Shown: positions 1 to 11,806, counted from the first letter of the whole stretch. The stretch is 63,069 bases of DNA, filler included, from Reticulomyxa filosa (GCA_000512085.1; 16 parts of 16 records of this genome joined end to end with filler, not necessarily neighbours in it), one strand, 5' to 3'. The notes: a model not told the origin generated them from the sequence alone. Program-made: numbers and translations.

Positions 1-110
1 ACACAATATATGCTGTTATACAATAGCAATGCAGTTCGTAAATGTATCCCGTCCGTTAAAAAAAATTTACACAAAAAAAGCTTGGTGTGAAATAAAGCTC
101 AGTGAAAGAT

Positions 111-2101
111 ATGAGTGGAGCGGAGGACGAGAAAACTCCAAAAGAACCAAAAATTACAGTACTTCCAGTTTCTTTTGAACAATCGTGCTTTGATAAAAAT
201 TGGATCTTGCAATTGAATAAACAAGAACAATTTGAAAACTTTATTTGTTTGATTTGCAAACAAGTTGCCAATTATCCTATCGAAATTGATTGCCCACAAC
301 ATAAAAGTATTAATGAGTCACCAATTGTTGGTGAAAATTGCTTGAAACAATTTTTGAAAGTAAATCCGAATTCATGTCCTATTCTACCTCATGACAATTG
401 TATTTATTATCGGAGTGTTGTGATACAACGATGTAATGATGCCTTGAAGGTGATATGTCCACTACAATTTCAACAAGGGGGTGAAAGTATTACATGTGGT
501 TTTAAAGGAAAAATTAAAGAATTAAATGATCATTTGAGCAATGTCTGTCCATTGAACATGTCAGATTGTTGGTATAAGCCATTTGGATGTGAACACAGTT
601 GTCACAAACACAAACTAAGTGATCATTTGTCTTTAGAATGCAAGTTTCATTTTGATTTGGTTGTGAAATTCATTGAAACATTGCAAGCTAAGTTTATATA
701 TATGTATATACATACATATATAAAATATTGGAATGAAATAACATAAAACATCAACAAAAAAAAAAAAAATAGAAAGAGATAAAACAATTGAAATTACAAA
801 TTCAATTGAATGAAAAAAAGAATGAAACTAATGCAACGTTGATAAATGAAAATATTGTATCGAAGAAAGAAATTGAACAACCTCAACAAGATAATGAAAT
901 TAAAAAAATTCAAAGGGAATTACACAAACTTCGTGCTGATATTGAGAGTATGAAAAAAGAAACAAATTCTAATGGATTCATCAAATCATTACAAGAAAAG
1001 AATGATACTTTTTCTTTTGATTTATTTTGTTCATCATCCAAATTATTTAGGACATTCAGTGGACACACTAGTGTTGTATGGAGTGTGGATTACTCAATAT
1101 TCGATGATGGTCAATATCTTTGCTCTGGATCACATGACGGTACAGTTTGTGTATGGGACGTAGAGACAACCAAGCAAATTCGATCATTCAAAGGACATAC
1201 ATCTCATGTGTATTGTGCAAAATTTGCACCATATTATCAACATTACCATGGAATAAATAATCGTCGTCCCGTTATTTGTTCTTCATCACATGATAAAACT
1301 ATTCGTTTTTGGGATTTCGAAACGTGCAAAGAATTTCAAATATTGAATGGACACACTGAATGGGTTGCTGGAATTGCATTTTCGCCATTCAATAATGGTA
1401 AATATTTGTGCTCTGGATCACATGACAAGACAATTCGTTTATGGGATGTTGAAGCATCCAAATCATTACATGTTTTCAATGGACATACAAATTGTGTTTG
1501 GCATGTGGAATTTTCACCATTGCAAAATAATAACAACAGTAATAACGAAAATAATAATGCTGGTGTGATTGGTGGTAATGGTTATTTCATTTGTTCTGGA
1601 TCGTATGATAATACCATTCGTTTGTGGGATGTTGAAACAACCAAAGAATTGACTGTTTTCAAAGGACATGAAGGTTGTGTGAGGAGTGTAAAATATTTAC
1701 AATATGAAATAAATACAATATGTTCTGGATCACATGATAAAAGTATTCGTTTATGGGATATTCGATCAAACAAAGAAATATATGTATTTAAGGGGCACAC
1801 ACATTGTGTATATGCTATTGAATGCTCACCATTTGTGAGAAGTAACAATAATAATACAATTATTAATTCAAACATAATATGTTCTGCATCACATGATAAT
1901 ACAATTCGTTTTTGGGACATTCGAACAAATAAACAATTACATGTAATAAAAGGAAATGAAAATGAGGAAGGTGGAATATCTTCGATTACATTTTCACCAT
2001 TGAAAAATAAAGTAAAAGCAAGCAAAAATACTGATGGGCGTGTTTGCAGTATTAATTTGTGTTATGGTTCGTATAAAGGTCCCATTTGTATTTGGGGATA
2101 A
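111..2101 (+). CDS. RING-like / TRAF-type Zn-finger / coiled-coil / 7x WD40 protein (TRAF7-like architecture), 2 exons (111-686, 773-2101)
   Basis: N-terminal CLIC..CPQH..GENC..CP RING-like motif, then TRAF Zn-finger motifs (CP..CGFKG..DHL..VCP; CWYKPFGC..DHL..C..H), a coiled coil and seven GH...WD blades. The two ORFs join in phase 0 across 687-772 (ETLQ|KEIKQLK). Confidence 0.88.
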
Positions 2102-2469
2102 CCTTAGTCTAGGATTGTTATAAATTCAATTCAATTCATTGATTCTTTTCCATTTTATGCAGGTCAGTTGAAGCGGATAAAAACATGAATACAGTAAAAA
2201 AAAATTTTTAAAAGAGTCTTGAAGAATTTGTTTTGGAATATGATCAAATGTGTATTCTACATTGTTGCATATGCATTTGATTTATACTTTGTTTATTTTT
2301 TTTCAATTAGAATATTTTTTGAAATAAAGCAAAATTTGCACCTTTTTTTTTCAAAAAGAATCAAAATATTTCTTATTGTTGGAAAGTACACTAACCCCCA
2401 AAATGAATCAGACTTTTTTGTGAATCATACACATATTAACCTTACAATCACAATTGCCATGCCTTTTTT

Positions 2470-2745
2470 GTTCGTTTTTAATGGTATATTGTTGCATGCT
2501 TGCAAGATAATACAATACGATTATGGGTGTCATTCTAGAATAGAAATAAAACAATTATTAGTATATGCAAAACATTTATTAAGTACACGATTTTTATCAG
2601 ATGGTAAATTATTGCATCATGTTCTCTGGATAATACAATTTAAATATGAAATATTGATAGTATAAAATCTTGAAAGAATATTCAAACCATGCGAATAATA
2701 TAAAACATTTTTCAGATGGTCGAACGATTGTATTGTGTTCGAATA
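2470..2745 (+). pseudogene. Decayed WD40 repeat remnant (about 3 blades)
   Basis: Frameshifted or stop-containing pieces read QDNTIRLW (~2503-2526), FLSDGK-IASCSLDNTI (~2591-2640) and FSDGRTIVLCS (~2708-2740). Not in the ORF track. Confidence 0.7.
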
Positions 2746-2924
2746 CATTTTTTAAATTGTGACCTTGTAAACAAAATAAGCATTATTATTTACTTTGATT
2801 TGAAACATTTTTTCAAGTTCACCGAAAAGTAAACAGAGAAAGCCGTTGTTAATCTTGAAAGAAAAAGTTCAGTCATTTTTTCATCTTGCATCATCTAAGA
2901 CAAACTTAAAAAAGAAAATTAAAA

Positions 2925-4155
2925 ATGACCACTCATCGCAATGAAAAACAAATTTCAACTAAATCAGCATTGGTAAATAGAAAGTTGCTAGTTTTTAATT
3001 TTTTTATTATAATATTTGTTGTGTGGCTTGTGGTTGGGACAGTTAGAAGAAGAAATCCAAATAATCATTCAACATTGGATCAGAATATTACATATTAAAT
3101 TTGGATGGGTCTATGATCTTGATAAACTTATTGTCAACTATGTATGTTTTTTTTGTTGATTGTTTTTCATTCAATAGCAAATATTTATTCGTTAATATTA
3201 TGTATAATTACAATTTAACATAGTCAGGTATATTATTTATGCTTGATACGTTCCTTTCATCATCCAAATTACTCAATACGTTCAATGGACATACTCGTAT
3301 GGTGTGGAGTATTGATTATTCAACATTTGGTGATGACCAATTCATTTGTTCTGGATCAGGTGATAATACAGTTCGTGTATGGGATGTAAATACCAATCAA
3401 CAAATTCAATCATTCGATGGACATTCAAAGGCTGTAGGCTGTGTGAAATTTTCACAGTATCATCACCATTATCATCGTCGTAATGCCATTTGTTCTTCAT
3501 CAGATGACAATACAATTCGTTTTTGGGATATTAAAAATAATCAACAATTGAAAATATTCAATGAACATACGCTTTGGGTCAATAGTATTGTGTTTTCACC
3601 ATTTAATGGTGGTAGATATTTGTGTTCTGGATCTGGTGACAAAACTATTCGTTTATGGGATGTTGAAACATCCAAATCATTACATGTTTTTTATGGGCAT
3701 ACAAAAGAAGTTTGGTGTGTGGATATTTCACCATTGCAAAGCAATAACAATAATGTTGATAATAAAAGTAATAATATTGGTGTGATTGGTGGAAATGGAT
3801 ATACAGTTTGTTCTGGATCAATTGATACAACTATCCGTATGTGGGATATTGAAACGACTAAACAATTGAGTGTATTCAATGGACATATAGGAAATGTGAG
3901 AAGTATAAAATATGGATCAAATGAACTAGGAAATAATGGTGCAAATACAATATTGTCTGGATCATATGATAAAAGTGTTCGTTTGTGGGATATTCGATCT
4001 GGTCGACAAATTCAATTGTTTGATACACATGAACAATTGGTTAGTGCTGTTGAATATTCACCATTTATTATAGAGAATTGTGAAGCTGGTAGTAGTTCAA
4101 ATGTAATATGTTCTGCGTCGTTGGATAATACAATTCGTTTTTGGGATATCCGATC
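2925..4155 (+). CDS. WD40 repeat protein with a short helical N-terminal module; 3 exons, 3' truncated by the contig end
   Basis: Exon 1 MTTHRNEKQISTKSAL, exon 2 LEEEIQIIIQHWIRILHIKFGWVYDLDKLIVNY, exon 3 SGILFMLDTFLSSSKLL followed by six WD40 blades collinear with the upstream gene. Introns are GT-AG. Confidence 0.88.
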
Positions 4156-4302: not shown

Positions 4303-6438
4303 GTGACGTACATGTGGGCAAAGGTGTCACTATGGATGTACACATTGGGCGCAATATCGGCAGCGGTGATTATTACAGGCATTATATATCGTCAGTTTAA
4401 TCATATGGAAGCAGACTTGAAGCGCAGCTTGGAATCGTATCGATCCTGGGTTATGATGGACACCAAAGAGGAACCTAAAAAGTCCACTGGACAGTCTGCT
4501 GTAGGAATGGCTGTTGCTAAACTTGCTGGTTTTTTTTTTTTATTATTAAAAAATGCATGAGCAAAAAAAAAAAAAAAAAATTCCCCCCCCCCCCCCTTTC
4601 CCCTCCCCTTTATCACGACCCTTTTTTTTTTTTTCCGTCTCTCTTTGTAACACAGTCCCCCAAAGCGTGGTAATGCTAGCAGAGGTATTGGAAGAAAACG
4701 AACAGAAAACAAAAGGAAACAATGAAGAAGAAGAAGAAAAAGAAAAAACGAAAAAAATAGTGAAGATGGAAGAAGAACGGAAAGAGAAAGAGAGACAACA
4801 AGCACAGTTGTCATCGTCACAGGAGCGATCGAAAATGTTCGTCAAAGAGGAAATGTGGTATCGTCTATTCCCTTTCATGGATATAATGATGACTTTCTTT
4901 TCGGCACTGTCGTGTCGAGACAGTATCAACATCACCCTGCTATCACTGGGAGTAAAGCCCGATTCAAGTATTGGGGTTGGAATTCAGTGGATCTATGCCA
5001 TTTGCACGTTTTCGTTTGGTTCGTGTAAATTTTTTTGACGCGTGAAATAAAAAAAAATAAAAGGGGGGGAGAGGTCGGGGGGGGGGGGTCAAATTCTGCA
5101 CTCAAATTTTATACTCACAAAAAAAAAAAAAAAAAAAGGGTTAGACCGTGGCGATAATGGTCGTTTGGCGAGTTCAAAAATATACACACCGAATACGCTT
5201 GCTACGTAGAAGATGCGTGCGATTGGAATACTTGTACCGCATGCAAGAACACCGAAAGGAATACCGGAAGTTGACGTCGAGCAATTTGCGAAGTCAGTAT
5301 ATGAACGATGGACAGCCCATGGCAGAGCACGAAGCAGAAAAAGAGTCGGAGGAGTCGGGGGAAGACAATGGTCAGTCGCCACGATTATTGGAAGAAGAGG
5401 AAGAGGAAGACGAAGAAGAAGAAGAAGAAGAAGAACAAGAACAAGAACAAGAACAAGAGGAAAAAAAAGCGGAAAATGTTGAAAAGAAAACGAAAAAACG
5501 AACAAGCATGGAAGCGCAAATGCAAACACAAATTGAAATGCAAATACAACCCACCAGAACAGAAACAAAAGCAGAAGCCGAAGTAGAAATAGACACGGAA
5601 AAAGCTACCTCACAACCCGAAAACGTGGTAGATATGGCTTTGATACCAAAGACGAACGGACATGAAGACGACATGTTTACGCCGGCCATGCAAGTGAAAA
5701 TGGACGATGGAGTAATGCGACCCACATGGAGCGACAGCCCAAGAGCACAACGGTCATTGCCGATGCGACAGCAGAGTGTCAATGTCAATGATTGGTACAA
5801 CCATTTCAAATACGAATCCGAACCCGATTTGATGGTAAAGTTCACTGCCAATGACTTGTTCCAAGAGCCCGCCATGGAGTCCACCCCGGCCGCCGATGCA
5901 ACCGCACAAACAGAAGAGCAAGAAACGAACAAATTGAAAGAGCCAGCCAAAAGTGATGTCGCCCATAGTTCATTGCTGTCCATCAAAAAACCAAAGAAAC
6001 AAAAAGAAATTGACAATGAAAAATTGATGAAAGAAATTCATCGCATTGAAAACAGAATTATTGCGTTGAAACTTAAAGTATGCTTATTTTTTTGTTTGAA
6101 TTAATAAAAATCATTTTTTTTTTTTTTTTTTTTTAAAAATATATTTTTTGAAATGTGCAAATAGAAACACGGATTTTCGATCTTAGTAGCAGCGTTGTCG
6201 TTTATCTGTGGGCTGTCATTGTATGACGCAGCAAACGAATCATTCCACCGTGCATTGCCGAATAGCTTGGTTGGCCGCGAAGTTGGACTGCTGATTTTTG
6301 GATTGATAACCTCGACCTTGGCGGTGACGTGCATTTTATATTTGGATAAAATGACCACCGGATTTGTGTCATTTTTGAAAAAAATAACGAAATTGGAAAA
6401 GAGCAAACCATCCGAGGAAGAGAAGAACAATGGTAATG

Positions 6439-6469
<31 letters not shown>

Positions 6470-6875
6470 CAAAGACAAAGAAAATGATGACATGGAGGAG
6501 GCATTTGGTAATGAAATGAGAAATAGAAGTTGGATATCCACAGCCTTACCTGTTTGCCGTTGTTGTTCTCGCTTTTATCGTATTCAATATGAAGAAAGTA
6601 TCATGGCGTCTTGGTCTCGTAGACAATTGAAAAAAAAACGCCGTGAACAAATCCAAAATATTGAACTCACATTGTTATTCGGAAGATACATTACCAATGT
6701 CATTTCGTTGATCACTGCCATCAGCTATGTGGCATTCGTCGAATCGTTATTCAAACTCATCTTCACCTCAAATGGAGAGGTATGGTCTTCCTGGATCTTT
6801 TTTGCTTTACATTTGGGTATTGCTATAACAGTCTCCACGACTTTGGCAAAATTTGAACCAAAAAAGAAAAAGTGA
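4303..6875 (+). CDS. Multi-pass membrane protein with repeated hydrophobic hairpin units and long acidic loops; multi-exon, 5' truncated
   Basis: ORFs 4303-4560, 4553-5038, 5148-6104 and 6195-6875 are separated by GT-AG homopolymer-rich introns. They contain repeated TM pairs with poly-E and poly-N linkers. Confidence 0.7.
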
Positions 6876-8556
6876 AACACTGATATTTTCAATAGAAAGT
6901 TCTTTTTTTTTTTCCCCCTACCCTTCCAACTTTTTTTTTACTTTTATTCTGCAAAAGTTGTAGTTTTGTTGGTTTGTGGGGCTGCAACGTTGCCAATATT
7001 GCAAAAAGTGATAGGACGTGAACTGGTATATGTAAATACTTGTGCGGATGTTTTTGTTTGAGATGTTTGTACGTGCGTGCATTGGCGTGTTTGTTTGTGC
7101 CATTGCAAATGTTTGGAGTGCGTTATGAATTTTTTGGCGTGTTCTTTTGTGTGCCTTTCCTGTCATTCTTTGTCTTTTTTTCTTTCCCAAGCGTCTTAGG
7201 GCAGTCTTGTTAATTCGTGCATCATGAGGCCAAATGCTTTTATAATCAATCGTACCGCTGACATGAGATTCATTGCTGAAATATTCACAAACACTAATTT
7301 GTGTCACACTTGCCAATCTCCAAATTTCTATATAATCTTCCATGGGCATTTAGAACATTTTACTATAATGTATGATATGCTCATACAAACATTAACGTAA
7401 AATTTTTATCAATGATGAGAAAATACACAAAGAAGCAATAGCATGAAATACAAAAGTAGACGACAAATTGCTGAATCATTTTATTTCATTGTGCTGGAAG
7501 GAACATAAATGGAACAACTGCATTTTAAAGAAAGAAAGAAGCGTTGCTGAAATTACAATATCAACTCATTATGCTCCTTTCGGCTCTGAATTCTATAAAT
7601 TAGAAAATGATTGGCAAGTAGATGGCAATGTGTAGTCTTTTTATAATTAAGCTGTTCAAACTAAATAAAAAATAAAAACAACATACCATAATCGCGACAA
7701 AGTTAAATGAGCTGTTAAGAGATAAGTGAGAGATATACATTATATATCAATGGACAAGAACATTAAAAACAGTACATGGAACAATGTACATGATATACGG
7801 CGTCTCTAAAATACATTATGCACATAAAGTCCGAAAATACAACATATACAGAAACGATATCAAATGGATCAATATACGAAGCAAGTAAAAATTATTGTTT
7901 CTTGAAACGTTATATCTAACATTGAATATAATTTGTACTTTTATTTTCTCAAATTTTAAAAAGTTAAAAGTTGATATTGTTTTGGCTGTGTCATTATAAA
8001 TAGATTATGCTGATATCACATTACATGTCGTATTATTAGATGTTGACATATTTACATTATAATTTGGAGTATTTGTTTGTATTTTTAAACTTTTGCTGAC
8101 ATTTATTATGTTTATTTAAATTAAATTTGTGTTTTTCATTTGTTTTTATGCTCTTTGTCTGTTAGTACAATACGTATAAACATGATTTGCAAGTCTAGTG
8201 TTTCGTTTCGTTCGAAAAAATGTAGTAAGCAAGTTATCTAGACTAACTTAAAAAAGAAATGAAAATGCGATAACGAAATAACTCGACTTTGCTAATTTTT
8301 GGCATATTCATTATGTTATCGAGTTTGATTATCATTTTGATTGTTTACCGAATATTGAAATTAACCGTTTTTCAATCAAATTTCAAAATAATTTTTTAGT
8401 TGCGCTTGTTCTTAAATGAATACTTTCACTTGTGAAATATTGTATCGATATTTGTTAAATTAAAGAAAGTGATTCTTACACAACAATCATAAGGCATGCG
8501 TCTGCGTTTACTGCAGGAACTCTTTTCAATTTTTTTAAGAGGCAGGATTATTGAAG

Positions 8557-10033: not shown

Positions 10034-10458
10034 CTTCGCATTTTGCGATTTGCATACTTTTTTTTGTAACATTGTGGTTAACTTTCCATATATTTTTTGG
10101 AACATTATCTTTATTCTTTCCAACATATTGTCTCAATTGGAGTGAACACACTCTCTTCAATCTAAAAAAGAATAATCTATATCGTTATAATTTTTTGGAG
10201 CCTTAATTCAAACTTTTTTGTAATTTTAATCGCTATTGTTCGTTTTTTTGGTAAAGTAATCTAAAAATGGCAATTTAAACAATTTTTTTCTAACTGTCAT
10301 CAATTTTGTTTATTTTTTGTAGAAATTAAGTTTTGAAAGAAAAATTCTTTTATGAAAGAAATTTTTTGGTATCATTGTGACTTTATTTCTTTTTTTGTCT
10401 TTTTTATGTGCAGTGATTTTGAAATTGTTCCTGCCACACTCGATCGTGGTGCAGTACT

Positions 10459-11217
10459 TTATTCAACTTTTTTAGTAAGTTTGCATGCTTGTGCAATCCA
10501 GTCTAAACCTTCTTTTAGTCCTTGCCCTGTTTTTGCTGAACATGTTTGAATCACCCAGGGATGGGTTGTGATTATGGACAACATCAACTTGTCTTGGATC
10601 TGTTGTGGGTTCATTGCATCGAGTCAGTTGTGTGTACTTGCTTTTTAAGTGGAAGATAAAAAGAAACATCAAACATCTGTTGGTGGTAAAGCAGCTGCCA
10701 AATCCTGTTTGTTTGCGAGCACAAGAAGAGGCACTTTGTCCAGCTTAGAACTTTTCAATAGGGTCAACAACTCTTCTCCAGATTCTTCCATTCTTTTCTT
10801 GTCACAAGAATCGATAACATACATCTGTGTAAAACAATACAGTGAAGTGAAAAAACTAAAGACTTCAATCTGTTTCCAAGCAATGTTAAAGTCCTACCAG
10901 TGCATCAGTTTTATCCAAATAATGAGACCAATACGGTCGAATCGTTTTCTGACCTGTGAAAAAAAGAAAGAAAGCATACTCTGACAAAGTATTTTTTAAA
11001 AATACTGTGCTTACCCCCTAGATCCCGAACGGTGGCCTTTATTCCGGACTGGTGCACGTTTTTGATGTTAAACCCTTGAGTGGGCATTACATGAGCAATC
11101 TGATCATTGGTGAGACACTTTAAAATACATGTTTCCGGCATTGTCAAGGCCTAGAAGGAGAATTTTAACATCTTGTTCAATTTTGTGCTCTTTGCGGAAA
11201 AAATCAAATAATTTCAT
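10459..11217 (-). CDS. ARF-like small GTPase (ARL3/ARL2 family), divergent, with a frameshift in the P-loop as assembled
   Basis: Spliced translation: MKLFDFFRKEHKIEQDVKILLLGLDNAG/TCIL...PTQGFNIK...DLGG|QKTIRPYWSHY...YVIDS..KKRMEESGEEL...LVLANKQDL...IQTCSAKTGQGLKEGLDWI. G1-G5 motifs are recognisable. Confidence 0.85.
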
Positions 11218-11806
11218 TTAATAATTAATAAATACAGAAATAAACTAGAAGCTAAAAATTATGAAATAAAAGCTATGAGCTCACAGTACTGAAAATTAGT
11301 AAAAATATTTTGCAGCATTAATTTTAACAATATTTGTAAACTTTTGAAAGAGCAAATAATACGTTCTCTACGATATTACAGAACGAGCATTCACTATGTT
11401 TCATCAAACCAACTAAACAATTTCTATTGGAGTTTAAAATGGGCGCGATAAATCACTAATGTTTTCCCTAATAAATTTAAAGAAAACATCTCTAGCATTA
11501 ACTCGGCACAGCACCAAGAACAAAAATATTCAACTCCTGGAAACACAAGGAAATGTTAATATAGAATGATCTAAAAAAGATTGAGTTTTGCAGATTATGA
11601 AAATGACATCAACTAATCTTTTCGACCATATTTTGATTTTAATATTAATTTTTTATTTGATCCTCAGGAACGTTAATTTAGAGTGATTGCATATGTTATA
11701 GTTGCTTTCTCAAATATGAGATTTTAGAAAAGAAGGAAAGCTTTACCTTGAGATGATGAAAAAAAAGCTTTAATTATTTAAATATCAAAACACCATTTTG
11801 AAAAAA

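Follow-up and report, generated by a model that had tools for sequence, protein, structure and literature searches.

The contig ASPP01023811.1 of Reticulomyxa filosa (GCA_000512085.1), a giant single-celled, syncytial protist among the rhizarian foraminiferans, carries two tandem WD40 genes and raises the question of what such a pair recognizes. The entire contig makes up positions 1-4155 of the window analysed here (63,069 nucleotides, filler included), and both genes lie in it. A sequence-only reading had proposed that they belong to a large family of variable binders that feed targets to ubiquitin ligases in non-self or pathogen recognition. Our analysis points to a set of variable receptors that pick substrates for ubiquitin ligases and are directed at foreign targets, and to this whole chain we give a probability of about 0.5.

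Sequence comparison places both genes in a lineage-specific, Reticulomyxa-specific family of seven-bladed WD40 proteins. The best 120 homologues of the gene 1 WD domain are without exception R. filosa proteins, 119 of them paralogues with 54-79% identity to that domain, and all named close matches among those listed are from R. filosa as well. The final tree, which includes RING-bearing members from further searches, holds at least 137 family WD40 domains, a lower bound taken from homologue listings, so the large family that had been anticipated is real. The 1815 matches of the homologue search were rejected as a measure of family size, since unrelated WD40 proteins are among them. Metagenome contigs contained no relative above 36% identity, and the nearest ESM Atlas cluster has 117 members, all eukaryotic, with Foraminifera the commonest. 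The literature that we searched, which did not include the genome paper (Gloeckner 2014), holds no description of the family.

Where, then, do these paralogues differ? The WD domains of the two genes align blade by blade with 64% identity and have in common the idiosyncratic loops that the sequence-only reading had named. It is established that WD40 proteins bind through the top-face positions R1-2, R1 and D-1 (PMC3419727); top-face sites were placed here by motif and predicted secondary structure. Between gene 1 and gene 2, 14 of these 18 sites differ, versus 97 of 281 others (Fisher p=5e-4). Each residue listed earlier is present in the sequence; the accompanying statement that every blade differs at the same sites holds for those 14, but four are identical between the two genes (R1 of blades 1, 4 and 5; R1-2 of blade 3). 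In gene 1, the first hypervariable set (R1-3, R1-2, R1, D-1) has its codons at 1070, 1073, 1079 and 1133. Pfam WD40 matches fall in six stretches of this gene, and its seventh blade, a blade that lacks GH and WD motifs, is hypervariable too. The AlphaFold model of a full paralogue (P0062; mean predicted local distance difference test score, pLDDT, 87) is a seven-bladed propeller (Z about 41) with two lower-confidence helices before it. By Pfam and the predicted model, the family has a seven-bladed propeller with top-face hot spots.

Across 121 paralogues, the most variable 18 of 296 non-loop sites are all R1-3, R1-2, R1 or D-1 positions. The 28 top-face sites have a median entropy of 3.16 bits, the remaining sites one of 0.67 (p=4e-17); most positions that follow a WD dipeptide or lie in strand d fall below 2 bits. 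Pairwise identity averages 73% in the scaffold and 17% at the hot sites, up to 19 amino acids occur at one top-face site, and the 21-residue hot-spot signature is different in each of the 121. The face is equally variable behind both of the N-terminal head types described below (3.04 and 3.07 bits). This per-site entropy check, which had been suggested with the sequence-only reading, bears out a fixed scaffold with a hypervariable top face: variation is not even but concentrated on that face. Trp makes up 12% of hot-site residues, versus 0.4% under a neutral, AT-rich fourfold composition (34-fold enriched), and Tyr and Trp together 26%, with Lys and Ile depleted. With its abundance of Tyr, Trp, Gly, Ser and Asn, the hot-site composition is like that of general-purpose paratopes. 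The D-1 residue of gene 1 is His (CAT) in five of six canonical blades (1121-1894), a feature shared by none of its nearest paralogues; such a His ring might bind a metal or an acidic ligand.

Whether this face has been selected was asked by codon tests of 20 genes, namely the two genes of this contig and 18 paralogues from ten contigs. The sample is biased to annotated genes; three unselected neighbours are intact as well. None of the 20 WD exons is interrupted by a stop, and their acceptor and stop position are conserved. Counted without any model, the proportion of nonsynonymous differences (pN) is 0.56 at hot sites and 0.14 elsewhere, that of synonymous differences (pS) is 0.35, and pN(hot) exceeds pS in 183 of 190 gene pairs. 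Site models (our own GY94-type code, 296 codons, relative branch lengths from M3) carried out the suggested comparison of nonsynonymous and synonymous rates (dN/dS, omega) and found omega>1 at top-face sites. Twice the log-likelihood difference (2dL) was 155 (M1a/M2a), 166 (M7/M8) and 121 (M8a/M8) under F3x4, and 155, 151 and 108, respectively, under F61. The positively selected class comprises 5-7% of sites with omega 3.7-6.7. Between 12 and 14 sites have a posterior >0.95; all are among the 28 top-face sites (chance 1e-16), and under M8/F3x4 they occur in every blade. Selected positions are R1-3, R1-2, R1 and D-1; D+1 is variable, not significant.

Hot sites have a synonymous rate of 1.19x and flanking codons one of 1.07x (neither significant), and fourfold-site differences near and far from hot sites are 0.27 and 0.26. 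Since both measures are flat, local hypermutation is not the cause, and a mechanism of that kind or one resembling diversity-generating retroelements (DGR) was rejected after testing. Recent gene conversion was rejected too, as no blade is near-identical between genes. The recombination signal is weak (pairwise homoplasy index, PHI, p=0.025); given their own trees and free branch lengths, blades 1-3 yield 35.6 and blades 4-7 86.7, both significant. The maximum was 5.6 in 12 null simulations and 15.9 in 12 simulations with tips shuffled in seven blocks, which mimic extreme recombination. We conclude that diversifying selection on a binding face is very probable.

What the face is joined to differs between the two genes. 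Gene 1 (111-2101, plus strand, as are all features of the contig described here) has the order variant RING-like domain, TRAF-type zinc finger (zf-TRAF), coiled-coil-like linker and WD40. Exon 1 (111..686), delimited by open reading frame, profile search, Atlas and paralogue conservation, holds the start, the RING-like domain and the zf-TRAF; the latter matches Pfam at E=3e-5, just below the Pfam cut-off. RING-like Cys/His residues are at 46, 49, 61, 64, 77, 89, 94 and 97, with Gly at 74 and an extra Cys at 26. The RING assignment draws on this Cys/His pattern and on Atlas features, by which the head lies nearest C3HC4 RING and zf-TRAF clusters (0.93-0.94) with a recognition score slightly under the tool's threshold. 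All eight Cys/His are conserved in 22 paralogues. The extra Cys, 20 residues upstream, is invariant (22/22) and could complete the zinc site in place of canonical ligand 5, which is Gly. In a single pair, the RING exon has pN 0.26 versus pS 0.76.

The exon structure of this head bears on how many ligands it has. Exon 1 may end at 659 with an in-frame GT donor at 660 (the NCBI model) or at 686 with a GC donor at 687, the position homologous to the intron of the paralogues. An in-frame GT..AG stretch (360..449), annotated by NCBI as the first intron and skipped in P0001, holds the last three putative RING ligands; 20-22 of 22 paralogues keep it in frame and conserved, so that these 90 nt of gene 1 are probably coding rather than intron. 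Were the splice real, gene 1 would lose three RING ligands. Two synthetic-metagenome runs contain a contig identical to 450-659 joined to 319-359, matching the NCBI intron calls, and have zero read depth across the gene 1 intron and the intergenic stretch. We did not count these runs as evidence of expression, because their reads were most likely simulated from annotated coding sequences. The gene 1 intron (687..772) is AT-rich with poly-A and an AG acceptor at 771-772, and is placed by frame continuity and the NCBI model. The linker (773..1009) is rich in E, K and Q and has homologues in the paralogues; its coiled-coil character comes from composition. The WD40 domain (1010..2101) has six canonical blades and a non-canonical seventh, with the stop at 2099-2101. 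Two further proteins have the variant RING/TRAF head without WD40, P0272 with an FKBP-type domain (PF00254) and P0278 with no Pfam domain. A RING/TRAF head in L008 (133-728, minus strand), frameshifted near an A-run, is a pseudogene or a sequencing error.

Gene 2 is built differently, and its spliced model was searched as separate exons, as were the other spliced models. Exon 1 (2925..2972) has 16 codons, a GT donor at 2973 and similar N-termini in paralogues; exon 2 (3043..3141; tblastn E=9e-12) is a 33-codon phase-0/0 exon that encodes what we call the HWIR box; exon 3 (3224..4155), supported by open reading frame, Pfam, conserved acceptor and alignment, encodes WD40 blades 1-6. The gene is open to the contig end at 4155, with blade 7 beyond the edge, and its NCBI model misses exons 1 and 2. 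The coordinates first given for the two genes leave out the N-terminal parts of both (111-1009 and 2925-3141) and, in gene 1, the seventh blade. The DNA between them holds a decayed WD40 remnant of another type, named FSPDG (2485..2745), with stops and frameshifts (tblastn E=2e-6 to an intact FSPDG-type gene in L002). We rejected the NCBI gene at 2240-3098 (238 amino acids), which has no Pfam match and overlaps both this pseudogene and the first exons of gene 2.

The HWIR box has 33 residues and two predicted helices; folded alone, it is modelled as one long helix (predicted template modelling score, pTM, 0.43). Its dN/dS of 0.34, from 20 copies in the fetched loci, indicates purifying selection. 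Among the 137 domains, 66 have an HWIR box, 21 a RING/TRAF head and 12 a coiled-coil fragment, and in 38 the N-terminus is short, truncated or of another kind. The box is N-terminal to the hypervariable WD40 family and to the second, FSPDG-type WD40 family; it also occurs downstream of a Kelch-like gene in L002, where it is probably that gene's last exon. One compact, conserved module is found here with several substrate-binding domains that are unrelated to each other. Modules of the F-box, BC-box and SOCS kinds are likewise short, conserved and common to several propeller families at either end. The hydrophobic spacing of the HWIR box may resemble that of a BC-box/Cul2-box or the first F-box helix, with no library match to either. 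By analogy with such modules, the HWIR box most likely binds a shared adaptor of a cullin-type ligase. Profile matches in the PDB to rBAT and P2X3 (E 0.09-1.5) were rejected as chance, and the box was not found in viral contigs.

FSPDG-type WD40 genes with an N-terminal HWIR exon, whose repeats seem internally more alike, lie in L002 at 6378-7548 and 10450-11570 (minus strand). Members of a Kelch-like propeller family, whose surface may also be diversified, stand amid the WD40 genes (L002 2083-3292; L092 2241-3314; L011 about 1500-1740), and a partial HWIR box follows a remnant in L011.

We favour the following mechanism. The two genes would be intracellular substrate receptors in which a conserved seven-bladed propeller displays about 28 selected top-face residues, so that the family holds many different sites for binding a peptide or protein, and each paralogue would bind a different one. 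Gene 1, with its RING-like domain, TRAF zinc finger and coiled coil, could act as a TRAF7-like single-chain E3 ligase, and gene 2 could dock, through its HWIR box, on the shared adaptor of a cullin-type ligase; the bound proteins would then be ubiquitinated. The ubiquitin-ligase coupling that had been proposed finds indirect support in the RING-like domain plus zf-TRAF of gene 1, but the RING is a variant and the gene 2 box has no known match; we regard it as fairly likely. The driver is most likely biotic conflict, with proteins of intracellular bacteria, viruses or ingested prey as targets by analogy with nematode and plant F-box proteins; given a selected binding face and ubiquitin coupling, foreign targets are probable. 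A stronger version, an immune repertoire free of NOD-like receptors (NLRs) in which hundreds of germline WD40 binders with antibody-like faces are coupled to ubiquitin via the HWIR box or variant RING against parasites or engulfed microbes, is tentative and somewhat unlikely.

Several known systems resemble parts of this arrangement. Thomas reportedly treated, in 2006, unstable families of ubiquitin-ligase adaptors with F-box or MATH-BTB domains in nematodes and plants, work that PMC8665587 sums up and tests anew. In the nematode F-box families, a conserved docking domain is joined to a substrate domain under positive selection (PMC8665587). The R. filosa family shares with these adaptors the lineage-specific expansion, a docking module under purifying selection, a positively selected substrate domain and the proposal that foreign proteins are targeted. 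In contrast, its host is a rhizarian protist, its substrate domain is a WD40 propeller in which only defined top-face sites are selected, its docking module has no detectable F-box or BTB, and a second subfamily has a RING-like head. TRAF7 is a single conserved gene. The order RING-like, TRAF zinc finger, coiled coil and seven-bladed WD40 is common to it (PMC11218536), gene 1 and about 20 paralogues, whereas the R. filosa RING is a Gly-for-Cys variant and the family is amplified and hypervariable; sequence matches comprised R. filosa proteins only, with no TRAF7 among them, and the likeness lies in domain order. The brown algal LRR-ROCO proteins, candidate immune receptors (PMC11378527), are also an expanded repeat repertoire under diversifying selection in a eukaryote that is neither animal nor plant, but there leucine-rich repeats (LRRs) joined to a GTPase are diversified by exon shuffling, while the R. 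filosa family varies one WD exon through point substitutions.

Likeness to HET-E of Podospora anserina had been part of the sequence-only reading and stands in part. Positive selection in HET-D/HET-E (HNWD/NWD) acts at top-face codons 7, 9, 25 and 27 (PMC1805685), and three of four selected positions, R1-2, R1 and D-1, are common to both systems (PMC1805685, PMC3419727); R1-3 is selected in the R. filosa family, where D+1 is variable but not significantly selected. In HET-D/E a NACHT nucleotide-binding domain precedes the WD repeats; neither the gene models nor the Pfam scans of the R. filosa family contain a NACHT or HET domain. Concerted evolution gives HET-D/E repeats of high internal identity; homogenisation of this HET-E kind was rejected for R. 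filosa, since blade cores are 46% identical within a gene versus 69% for the same blade between genes; R. filosa blades are blade-specific, not homogenised or shuffled, and there are more than 100 paralogues versus about 10.

Some observations weigh against a ubiquitin-coupled repertoire under a continuing arms race. Ligand 5 is Gly in 21 of 22 gene 1-type RINGs, which are thus not canonical C3HC4 RINGs with eight zinc ligands, and Pfam and PDB searches of the head gave no significant RING match (best Pfam C3HC4, E=0.2). Nor did the HWIR box have a meaningful match in Pfam, NCBIfam, PDB or Atlas, where 33 residues give little search power. The codon models are our own code, use naive empirical Bayes (NEB) posteriors and have no multinucleotide-mutation term. 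The tree has a star-like shape (terminal 22.4, internal 2.7), clustering at 90% identity leaves each of the 120 proteins by itself, and the lowest pS of any pair is 0.14. The youngest pair has no hot-site excess (pN(hot) 0.12 versus pS 0.14); from these features of the tree, the selection may go back to an old radiation and does not have to reflect an arms race that still continues. Among the pairs next in closeness (pS 0.16-0.19), pN(hot) is already 0.53-0.67, so that diversification was fast after duplication, and assembly collapse could hide young copies. The closest pair, L009 2235-3317 and L010 2385-3452, keeps 18 of 21 hot-spot residues, with differences clustered in blades 1-4; it could be alleles or a recent duplicate.

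These same features suit adaptors for endogenous targets, neofunctionalised after a duplication burst and serving signalling, cytoskeletal or motor cargo, or turnover in a giant syncytium: young copies are absent, the youngest pair keeps its hot sites, R. filosa has very many gene duplications overall (PMC11069148) and TRAF7 binds host kinases via its WD40 domain (PMC11218536). We consider this rather unlikely, given a face that differs in each of 121 copies with up to 19 amino acids per site, and the difficulty of naming more than 100 unrelated endogenous ligands for one scaffold. The paratope-like composition of the hot sites also speaks against endogenous targets. Variable binders might instead act without ubiquitin ligation, their heads serving oligomerisation, membrane or cytoskeleton targeting, or signalling. 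The missing RING ligand, the annotated splice that would remove half of the gene 1 RING, and a box that has no known homologue and folds alone as a single helix are all compatible with this; yet the invariant extra Cys could stand in for the ligand, the RING, TRAF zinc finger and coiled coil are in the layout of a TRAF E3, and the box moves among propeller families in the fashion of cullin-adaptor boxes, and we judge a role of this kind improbable.

Allorecognition governing plasmodial fusion, as by het-d/het-e in Podospora, would fit a syncytial organism and the positions shared with HET-E, and caspase-like Peptidase_C14 genes adjoin two paralogues. It would need allelic polymorphism at a few loci, which in the HET-D/E receptors determines incompatibility, whereas the diversity in this one strain's genome lies among more than 100 paralogues; together with the lack of NACHT and HET domains and the non-homogenised blades, this makes it distinctly improbable. 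Of 11 contigs, two have such Peptidase_C14 genes in the vicinity of family members (L006 3851-4387; L011 1-1144), and an IBR-domain gene begins at 10381 on L003; such neighbours may be chance in a gene-dense genome. Finally, the variation might reflect no positive selection at all but relaxed constraint, local hypermutation or a recombination artefact in a largely dead amplified family. Pseudogene remnants (window 2485-2745 and the L008 RING gene), the weak PHI signal and a cruder one-class test that separates omega>1 from hypermutation weakly (2dL 4.9) lean that way, but pN(hot) exceeds pS without any model, synonymous rates (two-class fit) and fourfold sites are flat, Trp enrichment runs opposite to the AT bias, simulations stay far under the observed statistic and all 20 WD exons are intact. 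We regard this explanation as very improbable and largely refuted already.

A repertoire of ubiquitin-ligase substrate receptors for foreign targets would matter in several ways. Its more than 100 natural binding faces on one stable scaffold would be useful for binder design, and the HWIR box is a conserved, mobile and unannotated module. Little is settled on how protists recognize intracellular invaders, and hardly any receptors have been described from Rhizaria; the family is a candidate repertoire that has statistical support and specific positions at which to mutate it. It indicates that diversifying recognition through the WD40 top face arose independently of the fungal NLRs, and the idea of an arms race through ubiquitin adaptors would reach beyond nematodes and plants into a distant branch of the eukaryotes.

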